A stretch of 64,000 nucleotides of DNA, taken from NCBI GenBank assembly GCA_033442325.1, contig JAWQFM010000011.1:717957-781956 (forward strand), read 5' to 3'. Position 1 is the first letter of the stretch, and each line of letters opens with the position of its first letter. The notes under the pieces are model-generated. The model made no database searches. It was not told where the DNA came from and was given only the letters and a program-made list of their open reading frames with translations. Source of the stretch: Salpingoeca rosetta. Lineage: Eukaryota > Protista > Choanoflagellata. Made by a program: the position numbers and the translations under genes. Shown one piece after another: positions 24,016 to 46,453 of this stretch.

Positions 24016-33590
<9,575 letters not shown>

Positions 33591-34133: not shown

Positions 34134-37100
34134 ATGGCACACCCTACAAGGTCAGCACACACAACACACACAACACACACACACAACACCACAAGCGCCC
34201 TCCCTTGATCCACCCTTCCCCTCGTACGCCTCCTCCCCCCCCCCGCTCGTACCAGCTGCCATCGCTTGGGGTTTCCCGCCACCTCACCCATACGCTTTGC
34301 TCCCTCCACAAACCCGCACTCCGCACACTCCGCACACTCCGCGCACTCCTCGGCTTTGGCTTGCAGCTTCATCCACGAAATTTGCACACAGAACATGCGC
34401 CCGTTCCCCTCCCATTCGTTCTCGATGGCCAGCGAAGGCGGCTTCGTATGCAAGGTATGCATTCGCCCCCCTCCCCTTTTCCCGCCCTGTTTTGGCACCC
34501 ACTCGCGCACCCACCGCTATATTCGGCCGGGCACTTGCTTGCATGCATTTTCGCAGCGATTCCTCTGTGGCCGTGCTTTCGTTCCCTGACTGCTTGTTTT
34601 CACACAATATGCCCTTGTGTATGTGTATGTATGTCTATATGTGTGTATGTATGTGTGCATGTGTGTGTCTGTGTGTATGTATGTGTGCATGTGTGTGTAT
34701 GCATGTGTCTGTGTGTCTGTGTGCACTGTCGTATTCACCGCCACCACCACCAACTGCTGCCACCACCAACTGCTGCCACCACCAACTGCTGCCACCACCA
34801 CCGCCAACTGCCAGTGTGTCTTGTTTGATGAGTTTGAGTTTGTGGGGCACGCGCGCAACAAAAAGGCCGCCAAAGCTGAGGCCTTCTTCAAGGCCTGGAA
34901 AGCCATCACCAACCGCGACCAGTTTGTGCAGGACCTGCCAAAGCCTCCATTTCACATTGTGATTCAGCGCCTCCGCGACGCAGTTGCAGGCGGTCAGCAC
35001 CAGCAACGCCAGCAGCACCAGCGCCCGCAGGGCGAACACGAGGCAGCAGCATCCCATCACCACCTACCCCACGGCCCACAACAGCACCATCCTCAACACC
35101 AACAACAGCAGCACATGCAGCACGACCCGCCTTTGCATCACGGCCACCAGCCTGTTCATCACTACCACCGCCAACAACAACCAGCCCACGAACGATCCGC
35201 GCAGCCATACGCCAGCCATAACAGCAGCAGCACCACCACCACCGGCACTGGCAGCAACAGCAGCAACGTCATAAACCAGGCACTACCCTCTTCTTCCACC
35301 CATTCACACCACTCTGGTGGCTACTTCAACCCAGCAGTGTCGTCAGCGTCAGCATCAGTACCGCCACCAACGTTACCGCAACAACTGACCGTGCCAGTCA
35401 GCTCCCCATCCTCATCCTCGTTCACAACTACCCCGCCCACTGCCCCACCTGCCCCAGCAACCACGCCAGCGTCGGCTGCAACAAGTACGGTCTCAGAACT
35501 GGCCACGCCCTCGCCGCCCAGCGTCCGCCCACCTGTTCCCTTGTCACATGAACCAGGCAGTGTTGCCCATCTCGTGACGCAGACCAACCCCGTATCTGTC
35601 CTCAACCAAACCTGCAGCCAGTTTGCGCTCCCCCTCCCCGTGTTCAGCGCAGACAACAGCGAGGTCACCCTGTATGACGGGTACACGGTGCGCCTCTCCA
35701 TCATCCAGAACAAGAAGACCACCAAGCGCTACACCGCTCTGGTTGCCCTGGAATACCTGCACGAGAAGCTGGGCCTGGGCCTCGTCCCAACCTCCGCATA
35801 CGCATGGGTTGCCACGTCGTACCTGCCCGGCGCCACCTCCGACGCGCGCGCCGCCCTGCCAACAAGCAGCTCCACCTCGGAGACGTGGCCGCGCGTGCCC
35901 ACCAGCACTGCCACATCAGCTGCCACGACCGGCCCCGTCACCAGCATGGCCAGCAGCGGCAGCACCACCAGCGCCTTCTCTGGCAGCGCCTTTACGGGCA
36001 GCACCTACAGCATGGGCATGGCCCCACAGCCGTTTGTGTCTGCTGCCTGCGGGTCCTTCCGCAACCCGGACGTGTACGACGTCACCGCAGACTCTGCGCA
36101 GTTCTCTGTGGCGGTGCAGCCGCTGCAGCCCACCACGCTCGCCAGCGCCAGCGCTGCCGTGGCATCCTGGGCACGCGATGTGCCGGGCTTGCTTGCGCGC
36201 CACCGGTTCTCACGCTTCAACCATGCCACCTACGCCTCCTCCGACAGCAGCTACCTCAACGCCATCCTCACCTCTATCAAGAGCGACAACTTCCTCGTCT
36301 TTGTTGAGTCGTTCTCCATGCGCGTGCATGTGGCCGGCCGGCTTCTCCGCCACCTCATCTCCACGGTTCGTCTGGCTGTGGGGCTGGAGCTGCGTGCTCG
36401 CTGGTCTCGCGTGCGATTGTTTGGGTCGTGGTTGATTGGGCTTTGATTGATCGGGCTCTGCTTGGTTGGTTGGCAAGCTAGTTGGGCAAGTAACTGCTGC
36501 TGTTTTGGTTCTATTGGACAACATCACGTTTGCGTGCCACACGCCCACACCGCATCGCGCGCGCACACACACACACATACACACACATACACACATACTC
36601 ACGCATGCACACACAAATTGTGTGTGTGTGTGTTGTTCTGCCTCCGTCATTGATGCAGGCCGGGCCAGAGCGGATGTACCGCCACCCCACGGATCCCAAA
36701 GACGATGCCACGTCCCATCAACCGTTCTCAAAACGAGCACGATTCCGTTAGTGTGTGCGTGTGTCTGTGTCCGTGTGTCTCTGTGTCTCTGTGTACATGT
36801 CTGTGCATATGTGTGCAATACTGTCAGTTTGCAGCAAATGTTACGTATGTCGACATCAGACCCGCATCTGCACTCATTTTTGCTCACAACGCACACGCAC
36901 ATACGCACAACCCCGAACCCTCCACCACGAAACAACACAAACTATTTTGAAGAATCCATTGGGTGGACTTCCCGGTTCACCTCGGATGATGACCGCAGGG
37001 ACCAGCAACAGACACACGCGCGCATCCCGGAACCCGTTTCAAGCGACCAAGTAGCGCTTTATGTGGTGTCGTCGGAGGCGTATGCACTGAAGGTGGCGAG

Positions 37101-40100
37101 CGTGCTTGGTGCCGTGGAAGGTCTCGGCTGCTGCGTTCCAGACAGCGCCCAGGTGTACGACGCGCAGGTGGATGTCAATGCCTGGCGGCGCCGACTGCAG
37201 CGTGCAGACGTGCTCATCTGCACGCCGACCACGCTCGTGCTGCTGCTCAAGGCACCGCACCTGCTTGCGTTTTGGCCCACGCCGGACCCCACCACAACCA
37301 GCGGCCACGGGGGGCAAGGCGTCGCGATGCCGCATGCACAGGCGCCGCCAGCACCTGCGATGCCAAAACCAATGACCATCCAGGCGCTCATCTTCGACTT
37401 TGATGCGCAGCTGGCAGAGGACCCCCACCTGGGCGAGGTCCTGGACATGTACAGGAAGCCGGACCGAGACAACCCGATTGCCGTGTGTGGCATCACGTCT
37501 GCGCCCTTGCACCCTGGCGCACGCAACCTGTTCTCCAGCTTGGACGACCTGACCGTGCGCACCAACAGCTACCCGCTGCGCGCCTTTGTCGCGCCGCCCA
37601 TGCCGGGCCCGCTCTTCCACGAGCAGCTGTGCAGCTGCGTGCCGTGCACGTACGACGACCGCCCTGCGGCTCTCAACGACCTCTTGCGCAATGCCGTCGG
37701 CGCCGCGGCGGCCGCACACAGCGGCTGGCAGGCCAAGCTGGAGCTGCAGGTGCAACGACTCCGCACGCTGTTCCCGCACGCAGACAGCGCCCACGCCTTG
37801 ATTATCCACCGCCGCTTGCAACGCGCCGCGCTGCGCATTCGCCTGTGCGAGATGATCGAACTTGTGGGCACAGAGTACGGCTTGTTCTGCACCCGCATGT
37901 TGTGGCGCCAAGCAGAGCGCCTTCTCGACGAGTTATCCTGCGATGACGCAGAGGAGCCCCTCTACTCCTCGTTTCTCAGCAGCTTCCACCCGCCTTCCTC
38001 AACCTCCTCAGTAACAACGGCGGCGGCTACAGCAGCAACAGCAGCCTCGCGACAACCCCACCATGGACAACAACAACTCCACCCTGCCCTGCGCAACCAG
38101 GGCAGAAGAGCACCTGCAGTGCAGGACCCGCGGCTGGCCCTGATGAAACGCCTGGGTCGGCAGCAGCAGCAGCAACAGCAACAGCAGCCCAACAGCGTGG
38201 AAGAAGAGGCCAAAGTAGAGGACGAAGGGTCGCTCTGGCCGCCCATCCCCCACTTGTCGTCTTCCGCATCATCTGCAGCAGCAGTACCACCGCATGGCAG
38301 GTCGTTTGATGCGCCAGCAATGACTGCGCCACCAGCAAACGAAGCGCAGCGCACGCAGTGGCTCAACCAGCACTTTCCGTGGCTGGATTCCATGCCACTG
38401 CTGTACGATGACGAGGAGCTGTATGCGCAGCTGTGGTATGCTGACGGCAGCGGCCAGCACGGTGTCATTTCCGAGGACTTTGAGATGGATGAACCCGCGT
38501 CCACGGACACCAAGCCATCGGCAGGCAGCCCCGTTTCCCCCAGGCTGACCGTGGCGCTGAAACTGCTGCAGGCTGCGCGTACCGAGCACACGCGCGTGAC
38601 GCTCGTCCTGCCGAACCAGTTTGGGGTCAACACCATCGCAGCCCTCTTGCAGCAGCGGCTCGCCACCACGGCAACGGCAGCTGAAGAAGACGCCCGCCCC
38701 GCCATCATCGCCGTGCCCACAGCCGCCAGCGCAAGGGTGCTGGTCCACTCCACCGCCGCCGCCGTGGCCACACCCTCCATCGGTGGCCACGGCAGCCGCG
38801 CAGCCCTTGCACCGCCGCTCACACCGCTCACGCGCCGCGTTCACCAGGCCAACCGGTGCTTTGCGGCCATGGCACGCGACGTGGAGCGCAGCGTGAAGAA
38901 GGCGTGGGAGGCCGACGACTTTATCATTGTCACCACCATCGATGCCCTGCCCACGGTGCCGCAGGCCACACTTGTGATCAGCCTCGCCGATGTGACCTCG
39001 GTGGACGCGTATGCAGCGGTTGCTGCGGCGTGTGTGCCCATGGCTGGCGCTGTTGTTCACGTGGTGCCGGACGACGCGCACACGCAGCAGCTCTTCAACA
39101 GCACACGCACCACGTACCTTGAGCTCCGCCACTACTTCAACCTCTTTGCAGGGGTGCCGGCGGAAATGGCCGCTGACGCAGCGTCCACGGGCAAGCCCTC
39201 GTCTTCCAGCACGGCTGATGGCACAGGCGCAGTTGGTGCTTCGTCGACATCACAAGCAGCGTCGTCGTCGTCACCACAGGCAGCGTCGGCAGCAACGGGA
39301 ACCTCGACAACGTTGGCTGTTGCCAACCCCAACCACATTGCCTTGGATGAGCAAGAGTTGACGGGCCTGGAGCAGCTCAACCAGCTGTGTCTGCGCCTTG
39401 ACTTTGGCTCTGGTGCGCGGCGTTCCCAGCTGCCCTTCTACACGGTGCAGGGACACACGTCGAAGCAGTTTGTTGCCGCGGCACACCTTCCACCGGCGCT
39501 GTCCGCCTTTGACAACCAGGACCTTGGGTACGAGCCCACGAATGCCTTGGAGAAGGTAGCCACGCGCTGCGTGCGCGCTCTCGAAGGTCACGGCTACTTT
39601 GACGCCATTGGCACACCGCAGATTGGCCTGAGTGCCCACCACCCCGCTGGGCTGCTGGCATATGCGCGCATGGCAGATGTGGCGCGTGGCCGGCGGGCGC
39701 TGCTCACCAGCCGCTACGACGCCACACGGGACTCGCCGTTCCCATCCACGGTCCTCATCAAGCAGGATGCTTCAGAAGAGTGCAAAGCCTTGGCACCACA
39801 GGCGACGGACAGGGCTGAGGAGCGCTGTGCGCGTGGAATGCCAAGGTGCCTGTCGGCGTCGCCCCACTCGTTTACAGTGGGCGACGGCCACAACGGCAAC
39901 AAATCCAGCACTGCTGGCCAAGCAGACAACGATGCCATGATCAACGGTGGCGATTCCGAGAGCACAGAGGACGCGGTCGTGCTGCACCTGCACAGCTTCC
40001 GAATTCGGCCCGTGGAGAAGTTCAACCGAGACCCGTTGAACAACTTTGACAACTTCCATGCGAACCGCGTGCTGCAATCGCTGGTGTACAGCGGGCCCTT

Positions 40101-42881
40101 GCCGCGGCTTGAGGAGCACGGCTACGAGGCGCTGGCGCCGTCGAGCGACGCTGAGGTCACGCAGGTGCCCGACATGACCGAGTTCACTTGTGGGCTGCTT
40201 GCCCCGCGCCCAATCTTGCGGAAACGCGCCAATCAGCAACCTGGGCGGCAGCACAAGCAGCAGGCCCAGGATGACTTCAGGGTGTTGCTCAACGCCGGCC
40301 TTTGCGGCAGCTTGAGGTACGTGGATCAGGTGGAGGTGTCACCGCAGCAGCTGGCCAAGTTTGCGTCATATCACCGTGAGTGCATGCGCACGGTGGCCCC
40401 TGCCGCCAGCACGGCAGCGCCGTCAGCGGCAACGCCAGCGTACATGTACTGCCCCCTGACCACGCACGGAGAGCAGTCCGTGGTGGCGTGGGGCCAGCTG
40501 CTGTCGAGCAGCAGCAGCAACCCGACATCGCTGCTTGAGGTGTCCATTGAGCACACAACGGGCCGGCTTGTTGCCTTCAAGGACAATGCCAGATCGCCTT
40601 CGTTTATTCTGCTTGGCAAAGACACGACGACGGAAGACGTCGGGGGGAGCCGTCACAAGGGCACGGAAGTTGGTGGCGGTGATGGTGGCGACAGTGAGGA
40701 TGGGAGCAGCCGTGCAGCGAAAGACTTTGCCGTGCTTGTTGTGCGCAGCCAGGACTATATCGCACACCGTGAAGCGGCGCCACGGTTCTCCATTTCGGCG
40801 TCGAAGCTGGTGTTCCTGCCCTACTCGCGAGAGGCGTGCATGTTCCCTGTCTTCGCCAGCAGCCTGGAGTGTGCACTGCTGCACAGGGAGGGCGTGCGCG
40901 TTGTGATGGAGGGGTCCCCACTGCAGTTTTCCGGGTCCGTGTCCCCGTTTGCTTGGAGCCGCCACCACAAGCACCTCAACCCGATTGCCTCCATGCTGAC
41001 GTCGTCCACACTCGGCTGCATTGGTGCAGAGCACCTAGCCATGCTTGGGGATGCGTATCTTCAGTTTGCTGCCGCTGTGCACCTCTACCTCAAGTACCCA
41101 TCGCGTGCTGTTGGCCCGATGTGCGCCCAAATCGCCTGGCTGCGCTCTGATGGATACCTCTCCAAGCGCTCTCAGGAGCTCGGTTTTCCCTTTCTCAAGT
41201 GCGTTTATGGGGGGAGGGGGAGGAGGAGTGACATTTGTTCGTGTGTGTGTGTGTGTGTTTGTGTGTGTGTTGTGTGTCTGTGTGTGTCTGTGTGTTGTGT
41301 GTGTCTGTGTGTGTGTTGTGTGTGTGTGTGTGTTTGTGTGTGTGTGTCTGTGTGTGTGTGTCTGTGTTTGTGTGTCTGTGTTTGTGTGTGTGTGTGTGTG
41401 TAGAGGGGGGTGTCGCGCATCAGTCAATTTGACATGCGTGTCTGTGCTGCTGCTTGTGTTGCTGCTCACACATTGCGTCTACGTGTGTTGGGAGAAGGTA
41501 TTTTGTGCCGTCCGTGCCCAAGTTCGAGGAGTGGGTGCCACCAGGATGGAAGCGGGCGCCTGATGTGGATGCGGTCGCGGCGCGAGCCCTGCTGGTGCGC
41601 GCATGGCTCGGCCTGCTGCATGTGGGCATGGCCAACCCGCACGGCAAAGGCCAGCGCTTTCACAGCAAGCTACACCAGGTGCTGCATGACTTCCTTCATG
41701 GCCTTGGCATTGCTTCTCGTCTCCCAGACAACGTCGGGCCACACGCGGTACGTCACACGTGTGTGTGTTGGCAAATCCATCACAACCAACAGGGCATTGC
41801 GTTGTTGTTGTTGTTGTTTAAGTTGTTGTTTAAGTTGTTGTTTAAGTTGTTGTTGTTGTTTAAGTTGTTGTTGTTGTTGTTGTTGTTTAAGTTGTTGTTG
41901 TTGCTGTTGTTTAAGTTGTTGTTGTTGTTGTTGTTGTTTAAGTTGTTGTTGTTGCTGTTGTTTAAGTTGTTGTTGTTGCTGTTGTTTAAGTTGTTGTTGT
42001 TGTTGTGATGTACAATCGTGGCGCTTTGTGTCTTCCTGCACGCCGCACAATGTGGGGTATAATGAGATGTGCTCTGTGTTTGGTGTGCAGATGCAATACG
42101 ACATGGCGCATCGCCGCTCCCGCGAAAAGATGCAGACCACGGTCCAGCATTACTGGCCAGTGATTGCGCCGCTTGCAGTAAGCTCCCTTGATGGTGTTGG
42201 AACTGCTGCTATTGCCGCCATGCGTGGCACATGTTACCCGCGCAACCAATTGTGCATCAGTTACAGCCTCATAACACCAACCACGCTGCTTGCCTGTTTG
42301 ACATTTTGGGGTTGCAGGAACATCTTGGGTTTACTGGCCCATCGTGCAACCGCGCCCTTCTTCTCGAGGCGCTGACCCACCGCTCTTTCTTGGTTCGTCG
42401 CTGTTGTACTTCGTCTGTCTGTCTGGCTGATTGGTTGGTTGGTTGTGTGTGTGTGTGTGTGGTTGTGTGTGTGTGTGTGTTTGGGTTTGTTTGTTCGCGC
42501 GTATGTGTGTGTTTGTGTGTGCGTGCGTGTGCGCGTGCGTGTGCGCGTGCGTGTGCGCGTGCGTGTGCGTGTGTGTCCTTTTTTTTTCTTTGGCAATCAA
42601 GAGGATTGCGCATGCCCACGTCACCCGCATGACACCAACCATTCTCCACCACACGCTATGCAGAACAACCAGCTCGGCAACAACGAGAAGCTGGCGTTGA
42701 TTGGGCGGCTATGCGTTCGCCTACTGTGCATTGACAAGTTTGTGCAAACCCAGGACAACGCCCCTTCCGTCTCCTCATGGGACGATATCTGGTTGGAAAT
42801 GAACACCTTGCCGTATGCCTGTGTGTGTGTGTGTGTGTGTGTGCGTGCGTGTGTGGTTGGAAATGAACACCTTGCCGTATG

Positions 42882-42915
<34 letters not shown>

Positions 42916-44586
42916 GGGGATGCTGGTTTACACGCTTTTTGCTTGGACCACACAAGCACACGCGCTTGCATCGCTGAGCCCTCACAAACACACACGCACA
43001 CACTGACTTGATGCCCGCTGTTTGTTTGTGTGCGCAGCGATGAGGTTGTCTCGACAGAGCTGCTGGTGCAGAAGGCGGTGGACATGTTTGGGATGCTGCC
43101 ATACATTCTGCACGACAGCGGAGAGTTTGCGGAGCTGGCTGCTAGCTGCGCACACGCTGTTCGCCACCGCTTGCCCCTGCCGGCCGGCGCAGAGGTTGGT
43201 CATGTGTGCTGCTGCTGTTCCTTGCTCCAAACTTGTTTGTGAGCCATGTTCTGCCTACACCGCTCCTGTCACTCACGCACGCACGCACTCACTCACTCAC
43301 TCACTCACTCACTCACTCACTCACTCACTCACTCACTCACTCACTCACTCACTCACCCACTCACTCACCCACTCACGCACGCTCACTCACTCACTCACGC
43401 ACGCACGCTCACTCACTCACTCACTCACTCACTCACGTATGCACGCACATTTCAATGCAATGCCTGCTTTTGGCAGGAGGTGGCGTCGTTTACGCTGTCG
43501 GTGTTTGGCGCCGTGTTTATGCACTATGGTCTTGATGGGCTTGCTGAGCGATGGAGGTTTGAGGGCTTGCCCACAGTGCAAGAGACTGCGAGCAAGAAAG
43601 CCAACATGGTCGCGGCAGTGCGAGACGCTACGCTCGACACGAAGCTGCACTGCATCTTCCACGCGGAGCCGCGTCCAGACGGGCGGGTGGATGGCGTGTG
43701 CATCCTGATTCACAAGAAGACCCTGCGACGCAGCGAGATTGTGCGCGCAACAGCGGACACGCGCGAGGACGCAATTGTTGCCGCTGCTAGGATGCTCAAC
43801 GCGAACCAAACCTTGCTCTGGTCGACGCTGAGCGAGCTTGGCAAGTACTTGCCGCCGCTGAAGAAGAGGAAGCCAAAAACGGCACCTTCGAGCGTTGGTG
43901 GGCATTACAACTCTGCCGCTGCCAACACCGGAGCAGCAGCCGTCACGGTCATGGATACTCAAGGCGATGGTGACGTGAGTACACCCAATGCAGGTCCGCC
44001 TCAGCGGCGGCAGCAGAGTGATGATGAAGAGAGGAACAGGGGAGGGGAGAGGGAAGTAGGGCAGCCACAACAGCAACAGCAACAACAACAGGTGCAGTCA
44101 CAACAGCAAGATATCGAGATGAAGACAGAGGATGATGATGATGGTGCCTGTTATGACCTTGTGCGAGGGAGCGTGCCCTCGCCACAACCCAGCGGCACCA
44201 CTTCCCAGCCGTTCGCATCGTTTTGGGCTCCCATGTCACCCCTGCCGCCGCAACAGCAGGTTCCGGCCATACCAACAGTGGCACAGTACCAGGAGCACGC
44301 GAGCACGCCGTTTCCCCCTTCTCCGCCACCGCCGCCGCCGCCACCATCAAAGGCACACGAGAGAGCGCAAGAACAAGTGGGGCCGGGTGCCAGCGGCAAT
44401 GGCCGTACTGACGATGCTGACGATGAGGAAGAGGAGGCCATTGCAGAGGACGATCATGATGAACCGCGGCGCACGGCAGGGCAGCAGGTGGTTGGCTCCG
44501 GCCGCACAGACCGCGGTGCCGTTCAGCAGCAGGAACAAGGTGCTGCTGATTCCGAAGAGGAGGCTGTTGCCGACGACGAGAATGAT

Positions 44587-44626
<40 letters not shown>

Positions 44627-44898
44627 CAGAGGTGCGTGAGACTACTATTGGTGAAGATGAGGATGAGGAAGAACCGGTTGCAGATGAGGAGGATGAGGAG
44701 GAGGCAGAGGTAATTGCTGATGCCGGTGATGATGAGAGCCATGTCACCGACACACACACGCAGCCGCCACAACCTGCGGGACAAGAGACCGTTCTGGTTC
44801 AGCAACCCACAGCCATGCCTCCACCACCCTTGACAACCCCGCCAGCTGCTGCCGCTGTAAACACAGAGGACGAAGAAGAGGAAGTTGCAGAAGACTAG
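34134..44898 (+). CDS. Highly divergent Dicer-like protein: dsRBD-dsRBD-degenerate helicase-DUF283-(platform/PAZ?)-RNase IIIa-RNase IIIb-dsRBD?-acidic tail
   Basis: Spliced dsRBD1 HPTSFIHEICTQ..FVCKCVL..GHARNKKAAKAEA; dsRBD2 NPVSVLNQTCSQ..NKKTTKRYTALVAL; helicase DVLICTP, LIFDFDA, VCGITSAP; DUF283 LNQLCLRL..PFY..FVAAAHLP; RIIIa EHLAMLGDAYLQFAAAVHLYLKYP; RIIIb LLLEALTHRSF..NNEKLALIG..SVFGAVFMHYG. Confidence 0.8.
41801..42006 (+). repeat. Intronic (TTG)nTTTAAG minisatellite
   Basis: Direct observation. Confidence 0.9.
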
Positions 44899-44914
44899 CT
44901 GCGTGCGTGCGTGC

Positions 44915-45031
<117 letters not shown>

Positions 45032-45262
45032 CTAAGGGCATGGCGCCAAAAGGTATAATACACTTGCTGCATCCATTCAAATGTATTGGTAACAGTTACA
45101 AACAAAACAAACAGGCAAACTTCATGGGCGAGGTGGCATCTCATACACACAGGGGCAAGCATGCACACACACACACACAGGCAAGCATGCACACACACAC
45201 ACACACACACACACATGCTTAGCGGAGGCACAAGAGAGAAGTGAAAGCAACAACTAGCATCG

Positions 45263-46453
45263 TCACGCTTTGCAGCATGATGAAGGGAGACAGAACAAGC
45301 AGCCACCCTTCTTGAAGTAACAAACGGCAGCGGCAGCGCCGACAACAAATGCAAGGGGCCCAAGCACGGCGGGGCAGGCAAGTGAGGCAAACAGGCCCTT
45401 GCTGGGCATGGTAACGAAGCTGCTCTTGGAGGCGCCGACAAAGTTTGGCGGCGGCTGCATCTGCGCCTTGTCGCCGTCGGTGAGGGCAAGCCAGCTCTGT
45501 GGTTTGAGAAAGTGGTCATAGAGGTAGCTCTCCTTGCTGCCCGCGGGCGGCTTGTACTCGTAGACCCAGTGCACGGTGGCGGGAAGGGAGACGAGGATGG
45601 ACTCTGCGCGGCCATTGGACATGAGGCCAAACTTGGTGCCGCGATCGTAGGCGAGGTTGAACTCGACGTAGCGGCCGCGGCGGTACAGCTGGAACTCGCG
45701 TTGGGCAATGGTGAAGGAGATGTTGCCGTTGGGCAGGAAGATGGAGTAGAGCTCGTTGAAGGTGCGGCCGAGAGCCATGGTGAAGTTTTTGGCGTGCTCG
45801 AAGCTGTCGCCCTGGAAGTGGTCGTAGAAGATGCCGCCGATGCCGCGCGTCTCATTTCGGTGCGGGAGGAAGAAGTACTTGTCGCACCACTCCTTCCACT
45901 CGCCATAGGGCACGTGGTGGGCGTCGCAGAGCTGCTTGAGGTCGGCGTGGAAGGCGATGGCCTGCTCCAGGATCGGGTAGGTTGGCGTGACATCGATGCC
46001 GCCACCAAACCACCACTTCTCGCCGCAGATGAAGAAGCGCACGTTCATGTGGATGGTGGGCACGTACGGGTTGGAGGGGTGGAAGATGAGGGAGACGCCC
46101 GTGGCGCGGTAGGGCGTGTTCTCCGGGATGTTGAGGGCGCTGGTGGCCGACTTTGGCATGTTGTCGCCGTGGATGCCGGAGAAGTTGCAGGCGCCCTTCT
46201 CGAAGAAGGAGCGAGGGGTGCGCTCCGGGCGCAGCTCCCAGGGGCTGGCGTTGCCGCCTTGCGACTGGAGGTAGTGGCGGCGGTCCACCTCAAGCACGCG
46301 CGTGCGGCCGCCACCCTTGCCTTTCGTGTAGGGCCACTCCGTCTCCTCAAACACTTGTCCAGAGAAGGATGACAGAAACGAGGTGATGTGGTCTTGCACA
46401 GCACGGAACTCCTGCTCCAGTGCATCCACTTGCTGCATCGATGGCGTCGTCAT
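45263..46453 (-). CDS. hemF: Oxygen-dependent coproporphyrinogen III oxidase, intronless, with a C-terminal hydrophobic tail
   Basis: GGGRTRVL, FEKGACNFS, ATGVSLIFHPSNPYVPTIHMNVRFF, WWFGGG, WCDKYFFLPHRNETRGIGGIFYD, RRGRYVEFNLAYDRGTKFGL. Confidence 0.97.
   Translation of the reverse strand: MTTPSMQQVDALEQEFRAVQDHITSFLSSFSGQVFEETEWPYTKGKGGGRTRVLEVDRRHYLQSQGGNASPWELRPERTPRSFFEKGACNFSGIHGDNMPKSATSALNIPENTPYRATGVSLIFHPSNPYVPTIHMNVRFFICGEKWWFGGGIDVTPTYPILEQAIAFHADLKQLCDAHHVPYGEWKEWCDKYFFLPHRNETRGIGGIFYDHFQGDSFEHAKNFTMALGRTFNELYSIFLPNGNISFTIAQREFQLYRRGRYVEFNLAYDRGTKFGLMSNGRAESILVSLPATVHWVYEYKPPAGSKESYLYDHFLKPQSWLALTDGDKAQMQPPPNFVGASKSSFVTMPSKGLFASLACPAVLGPLAFVVGAAAAVCYFKKGGCLFCLPSSCCKA

Follow-up and report, generated by a model that had tools for sequence, protein, structure and literature searches.

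The stretch of DNA analyzed in this study, called the window below, comprises 64,000 nucleotides (nt) of Salpingoeca rosetta, contig JAWQFM010000011.1. On its plus strand, the region 34134-44898 contains long open frames with TG/CA-rich stretches between them, the longest frame being 1,645 codons at 36466-41403. These frames were found to belong to one expressed gene of 11 exons, present as a single copy in the 55.4-Mb, 68-contig assembly, whose predicted product of 2,702 amino acids (aa) we consider, with a probability of roughly 0.7, to be a descendant of Dicer with dead active sites that probably binds double-stranded RNA (dsRNA) without cutting it.

The gene model possesses 10 GT-AG introns and a coding sequence of 8,109 nt without internal stops. 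Three stranded RNA-seq runs from the same organism were mapped on positions 40000-45900. The RNA of the gene is plus-sense, with the first mate nearly all on the minus strand, and its depth is low, about 2-30 across exons and no more than about 1 in introns. Six introns, all GT-AG, are supported by junction reads, from 5 to 26 each over the three runs: 41199-41497, 41748-42090, 42178-42317, 42393-42663, 42792-43037 and 43195-43476 (ends given after the stated cut shifts). Joined to the large exon, they leave one frame, whose only stop is the terminal one at 44896-44898. A (GTT)n repeat at 41800-41970, within the intron 41748-42090, shows very high depth from elsewhere and length variation; this depth peak does not come from expression of the gene.

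An earlier interpretation made from the letters of this DNA alone (the sequence-only reading) had proposed GT-AG splice joins and an exon of about 4.2 kb at 36953-41198. The joins are now backed by reads at the six introns, and spliced reads fix the 3' end of the exon, while its 5' acceptor is predicted. The 5' joins of our model were picked for frame and splice consensus alone. The donor ACG/GTTCGT at 36365 and the acceptor 36952/36953 are out of phase, and the only frame-consistent join found between them uses an 88-nt mini-exon at 36659-36746. Further upstream, an ATG at 34134 with the donor GTCAGC, an exon at 34367-34454 and an acceptor at 34814/34815 result in a consistent model. The spliced protein could be built as the sequence-only reading had suggested, but with two parts missing from its own model, the mini-exon and a putative N-terminal dsRNA-binding domain (dsRBD).

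Exons 1 to 4 are predicted. Exon 1 (34134-34150) supplies the ATG and the first 5.7 codons, and its join to exon 2 is in frame and completes the N-terminal dsRBD. The N-terminal half of this domain is encoded in exon 2 (34367-34454; acceptor TTGCAG, donor GTATGC) and its C-terminal half in exon 3 (34815-36365), up to about 34920, followed by a long low-complexity linker rich in Q, H, P, S and T and by the start of a helicase-like region, in which the Walker A position (36303-36326) reads VESFSMRV instead. Exon 4 is the mini-exon (acceptor ATGCAG, donor GTTAGT), which puts exons 3 and 5 back in frame with each other. Exon 5 (36953-41198) is 4,246 nt long and encodes 1,414 aa. It contains the helicase-like region, with motif Ic DVLICT at 37207, DFDA at 37396, a motif III-like ITSAPL at 37492 and a Hel2-like IIVTT at 38917, then a DUF283-like segment (about 39337-39660), a platform, PAZ-like and connector region (about 39960-40990), and the first half of the first RNase III domain (RIIIa) with EHLAMLGD at 41029.

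The second half of RIIIa is located in exon 6 (41498-41747), both junctions of which are read-backed; it carries a Dicer-like WVPPGW at 41532 and, where ADxxEA would be expected, ALLVRA at 41586. A C>G difference was observed in this exon at position 41690, in four of eight reads of one RNA run and one of nine of another, which changes GAC (D2061) to GAG (E) and is probably a strain or allele variant. The next four exons all have junction reads. Exon 7 (42091-42177) is a linker between RIIIa and the second RNase III domain (RIIIb), and its counterpart is conserved as the next exon on L007, the ortholog contig introduced below. Exon 8 (42318-42392) opens RIIIb with a typical LLLEALTHRSFL lead-in that aligns to the bacterial LLeqALTHrSy motif, exon 9 (42664-42791) carries the RIIIb signature NEKLALIGR for NERLEFLGD, and exon 10 (43038-43194) forms the middle of the domain. 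Exon 11 (43477-44898), whose acceptor is the best backed with 26 reads, encodes the end of RIIIb with ASFTLSVFGA at 43483 for ADxxEAxxGA, a dsRBD-like segment at about 43594-43820, and a long acidic and Q-rich tail down to the stop. A further joint of 247 nt at 44435-44683 was rejected as an intron, having GG..CA ends and 23 reads with a short side of at most 20 letters; it is probably a repeat artefact in the repetitive acidic tail.

One relative of the protein, P0001 (E 4.7e-78), came up when 1.84 billion representatives were searched exhaustively with phmmer. It is encoded on L007, a contig of 4,916 bp from SRR14727191 that belongs to a different organism with 40% G+C. Word-indexed protein searches that took the large exon or the two-species alignment as query gave nothing beyond P0001, and no further ortholog was found in two metagenome scans. 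The contig ends inside the gene and does not cover RIIIb and the 5' exons. About 1,300 aa of the two proteins can be aligned at 30% identity, with 45-52% around the connector and RIIIa, and the large exon aligns to P0001 along its whole length at 30% identity. The exon boundaries are identical, after ..LTK/..FLK and after ..PHA.

Profile comparisons establish two tandem RNase III domains in the spliced protein. The local profile was constructed from 105 sequences, E. coli rnc and 104 diverse bacterial RNase III open reading frames. The latter were collected by a pattern scan of genome DNA for sequences coding for ERLEFLGD, which was used in place of a protein search seeded with E. coli rnc that gave just close enterobacterial sequences. 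The spliced C-terminus scored 29.5 bits against this profile in hmmsearch (p 2.4e-11) with two domains, compared with 4.6 bits for the best of 1000 shuffled sequences. By hhalign, RIIIa from the alignment of S. rosetta and its ortholog matched with Prob 94.2% (E 1.2e-7), and RIIIb together with the following region matched with Prob 96.8% (E 2.8e-10) over 209 of the 236 columns of full-length bacterial RNase III. The Pfam model Ribonuclease_3 hits the first half of RIIIa with E 0.0027, at 18.9 bits against a cut-off of 27 and so below threshold, and a half-domain is also matched in the ortholog (E 0.004). The C-terminal part of RIIIa, RIIIb and the dsRBD-like exons have no Pfam match when scanned singly.

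The catalytic positions of RNase III are E41, D45, D114 and E117 in E. coli numbering. The first two of each domain were placed by profile alignment. RIIIa reads AEHLAMLGD, with A and D at these positions, and ALLVRAWLG, with L and R at the two positions of the second helix. In RIIIb, NEKLALIGR changes E to A and D to R, and ASFTLSVFGA gives S and L. One of the eight catalytic carboxylates is kept, the D of LGD in RIIIa, and seven are replaced, with the second helix read by inspection; this is the loss of about seven that the sequence-only reading had estimated, and the motifs it quoted were all recovered in place (VESFSMRV at 36303, DFDA at 37396, EHLAMLGD at 41029, ALLVRA at 41586, EKLALIGR at 42685 and ASFTLS at 43483). 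Neither hmmalign nor hhalign gave a confident placement of the second catalytic helix of RIIIa, and for RIIIb a gapped alternative from hhalign likewise puts no acidic residue at either second-helix position. The upstream glutamates of the signature are kept in both domains (AEHL and NEKL). The ortholog reads EHLAHLGH, ALLVRS and, for DECH, DLDI, so that its RIIIa keeps none of four catalytic carboxylates. With seven of eight carboxylates replaced, the two-metal RNase III mechanism should not be available to the S. rosetta protein for cutting dsRNA, and the loss of the Walker A motif and the DExH glutamate makes ATP hydrolysis unlikely.

The putative N-terminal dsRBD is new over the sequence-only reading. 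When compared with a dsRBD profile taken from bacterial RNase III, the first 70 aa of the spliced protein scored 14.2 bits, and hhalign gave Prob 84% with a score of 28.9, where 100 shuffles reached at most 15.5, a result that depends on two predicted introns. The emergence of a dsRBD from joins chosen for frame and consensus supports the 5' gene model, and a continuous open frame at 34815-36365 joins the domain to the motif I region. A putative N-terminal dsRBD is unusual in a Dicer-type protein and would resemble a fused dsRNA-binding protein partner. An internal dsRBD-like stretch at 35586-35780 (NPVSVLNQTCSQF...NKKTTKRYTALVALEYLHEKLG), suspected by eye, was discarded because its score of 10.2 is at shuffle level. 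The C-terminal dsRBD-like segment is not significant alone (10.8); the first 218 aa of exon 11 share Atlas features with RNase III and dsrm clusters (0.86), which is taken as a lead only. A basic patch PLKKRKPK (43855-43878) directly follows this segment and resembles a classical nuclear localisation signal. Low-complexity inserts account for about 600 aa of the protein, and the acidic and Q-rich tail for about 330 aa.

Four independent lines of sequence comparison, none strong alone, make the assignment to Dicer reasonably supported for the whole protein, and it is well supported for the RNase III half. In terms of Atlas language-model features, the 1,414-aa exon is matched only by Dicer and Dicer-like clusters (top 0.94, with 193 of 256 features shared), as is the ortholog (0.95, 186 of 256), and the named matches listed at ranks 1 to 19 are all Dicer clusters. 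This match is independent of profile HMMs, and the query exon holds just half of one RNase III domain. When a profile of the two species was compared to 177,635 PDB sequences, the top two matches were Arabidopsis DCL1 (E 0.087) and DCL3 (E 0.12). The DCL1 match consists of four collinear pieces, namely helicase motif Ic, motifs II-III (with a TASP-like ITSAP), the platform and RIIIa. When the helicase alignment, the internal dsRBD-like segment or the last exon served as the query against PDB, only polyglutamine artefacts came back, and these searches were set aside.

The Pfam family Dicer_dimer (PF03368) was found on the ortholog at P0001:735-860 with E 0.0035 and 17.8 bits, below its cut-off of 23.7. 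The match sits between the helicase-like and RNase III parts, which is the expected position. The S. rosetta segment at 39325-39702 gave no Dicer_dimer match, although it aligns to this ortholog segment. In the helicase-like region, VESFSMRV occupies motif I and DFDA replaces DECH at motif II, with sub-threshold DCL1 matches at motifs Ic and II-III. We also take DVL..T, F.P....W.PPG and AC.FP.FAS versus ELC..P.PASLW to be likenesses of Dicer motifs, the last being PAZ-like at the motif level. A search of the protein and the genome for PAZ (PF02170), which had no positive control, gave no match. The Dicer order thus appears to be kept, from helicase-like and DUF283-like parts through platform, PAZ-like region and connector to RIIIa, RIIIb and a dsRBD-like segment, with the helicase and PAZ folds unconfirmed. 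The remnants in Dicer order claimed by the sequence-only reading therefore hold for the RNase III pair and, by weaker lines, for the Dicer family, while superfamily 2 (SF2) helicase and PAZ folds were not established.

Several observations weigh against a catalytically dead Dicer descendant. No Pfam family reaches its curated cut-off, and the helicase, PAZ and dsrm models match none of the pieces. Searches of the S. rosetta sequence with helicase-only and DUF283-only profiles gave nothing, and the PDB matches to Dicers are weak (E about 0.1). AlphaFold2 models from two-sequence alignments were unusable, with a predicted local distance difference test (pLDDT) score of 27.7 for DUF283-RIIIa and 32.2 for Hel2-DUF283. 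The equivalents of D114 and E117 were placed by inspection, from an A-x-x-h-x-A-h-h-G pattern and the xADxxEAxxGA helix. No reads back the four 5' introns or the start codon. Moreover, the assignment to Dicer was set by profile and feature matches and not by a tree, so that an old paralogue is not told apart.

The protein might instead be another one with tandem RNase III domains, Drosha-like or lineage-specific, in which the resemblance to helicase, DUF283 and PAZ arose by chance. This would suit the fact that only the RNase III domains are statistically secure, the silence of the helicase, PAZ and dsrm models of Pfam, and the N-terminal dsRBD, which is not a Dicer feature. We regard this alternative as unlikely, since the Atlas matches from an exon with half an RNase III domain are all Dicer clusters with Dicer_dimer and Helicase_C and none is Drosha, the collinearity with DCL1 takes in the platform as well as helicase motifs Ic and II-III, and the Dicer_dimer match of the ortholog falls where it is expected in a Dicer.

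The genomic surroundings of the putative Dicer descendant were screened by six-frame domain searches of the assembly. Argonaute had been named in the sequence-only reading as absent from this species, and the scans detected no Piwi, PAZ or RNA-dependent RNA polymerase (RdRP) domain in the genome. For Piwi no match lies above the cut-off (best E 0.17); the PAZ and RdRP searches, both without a positive control, gave no match. A cryptic Argonaute suggested by a weak Piwi match at C2:101456-101617 proved spurious, as it is antisense to a gene with Rpb1 domain 5 (E 1.5e-11). The absence of partners in RNA interference (RNAi) is provisional because exon-by-exon scanning is insensitive, as the protein's own RIIIb demonstrates. 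The Dicer-like locus is the sole PF00636 candidate in the genome. A second RNase III-like locus on the plus strand at C16:1213968-1214090 (FKDEKLLLQALTHRTY...NGRLSLLG) scores 24 bits against the bacterial profile and has a degenerate signature; it probably encodes mL44, a mitochondrial ribosomal protein. Six-frame scans with PF00636 and PF14622 brought up no RNase III gene whose signature is intact.

These scans bear on whether the protein could still serve as a nuclease, either through a non-canonical active site or as a non-catalytic partner that positions an active RNase III, as KREPB proteins of the trypanosome editosome do for KREN endonucleases. One carboxylate (in the LGD of RIIIa) and the signature glutamates of AEHL and NEKL remain, and there are precedents for non-catalytic RNase III domains pairing with active partners (PMC5648035, PMC6800513). 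Such activity is nevertheless improbable, given that the scans turned up no further RNase III gene of intact signature for it to position, that the only other candidate, at C16:1213968, is degenerate in reading NGRLSLLG, and that both halves of the intramolecular pair are dead, leaving no composite two-metal site.

Conservation between the two species speaks against decay: an intact frame of 1,330 codons in AT-rich DNA, together with non-catalytic residues common to both proteins, indicates a functional protein. Least probable of all is a decaying relic, a transcribed pseudogene whose catalytic replacements reflect neutral decay and not repurposing, for although the catalytic and ATP-binding motifs are gone, long low-complexity inserts are present, expression is low and no pathway partners were detected, the coding sequence of 8.1 kb is intact over 10 canonical introns and accurately spliced, the 1,330-codon frame persists in a species of 40% G+C at 30-52% identity with the same exon boundaries, and EHLA.LG and ALLVR are common to both species at the former active site.

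A Dicer descendant with dead active sites could plausibly bind or sense dsRNA without cleaving it. The protein would still fold as a Dicer-like clamp, and its dsRBDs together with the surface of the dead RNase III domains are predicted to bind dsRNA or structured RNA. Independently of Argonaute, it would serve as a scaffold or sensor that binds RNA but does not cleave it; the KKRKPK patch may hint at a nuclear location. DRH-1/3, RIG-I and MDA5 share their helicase lineage with Dicer and are dsRNA sensors that do not dice, which is the analogy behind the sensor idea. Unlike the S. rosetta protein, which has lost the ATPase motifs and keeps dead RNase III domains, they retain an active ATPase and have no RNase III. 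More specifically, the Dicer scaffold may have been kept after Argonaute and dicing were discarded and fused to an N-terminal dsRBD, now working as an RNAi-independent, non-cleaving dsRNA sensor or ribonucleoprotein scaffold, a scenario that we put forward tentatively and hold to be doubtful.

Compared with known systems, the protein shares with canonical Dicers (Arabidopsis DCL1, 7ELD, and DCL3, 7VG2) the apparent order of parts, the nearest feature clusters and the top PDB profile matches, and presumably also the F.P....W.PPG-type motifs around RIIIa. It differs from them in that seven of eight carboxylates, the Walker A motif and the DExH glutamate are replaced and Pfam matches are sub-threshold, in the addition of a predicted N-terminal dsRBD, inserts of about 600 aa and a tail of about 330 aa, and in the lack of a detected Argonaute. 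KREPB4-B10 of the trypanosome editosome and mL44 likewise have an RNase III fold without catalytic residues that binds RNA or protein (PMC5648035, PMC6800513). They are short, single-domain proteins with an active partner or a place in the ribosome, whereas in S. rosetta both domains of a Dicer-type pair are dead.

S. rosetta is reported to be genetically tractable, so that the question is open to experiment. A Dicer descendant of this kind would be a natural separation-of-function allele and could reveal roles of Dicer besides cutting. Three published surveys score Dicer as absent from S. rosetta and/or Monosiga brevicollis and take this as a sign that RNAi was lost repeatedly near the origin of animals (PMC6040629, PMC3563456, PMC3991619), which bears out the absence stated in the sequence-only reading. 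A HMMER search for tandem RNase III domains gave no candidate in either species (PMC3563456), and none was reported in M. brevicollis (PMC3991619). We found no description of the gene in the papers searched. That the gene was missed owing to divergence, as the sequence-only reading had supposed, is supported by the score of 18.9 bits against a cut-off of 27 for Ribonuclease_3 and by the lack of any helicase, PAZ or dsrm match. A conserved and expressed Dicer descendant would shift the account from loss of the gene to loss of catalysis with the scaffold retained, and it suggests that relics of this kind can escape screens that rely on domain architecture.

Beyond the Dicer-like gene, the upstream minus-strand open reading frames at 25910-32363 were scanned one by one and showed no Pfam match at E <= 0.01. 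Downstream, a convergent neighbour gene lies on the minus strand at 44925-46450. Opposite-strand first mates appear from 44925 at a depth of 50-130, with reads beginning at 45114, and the neighbour is expressed about 5-10x above the Dicer-like gene.

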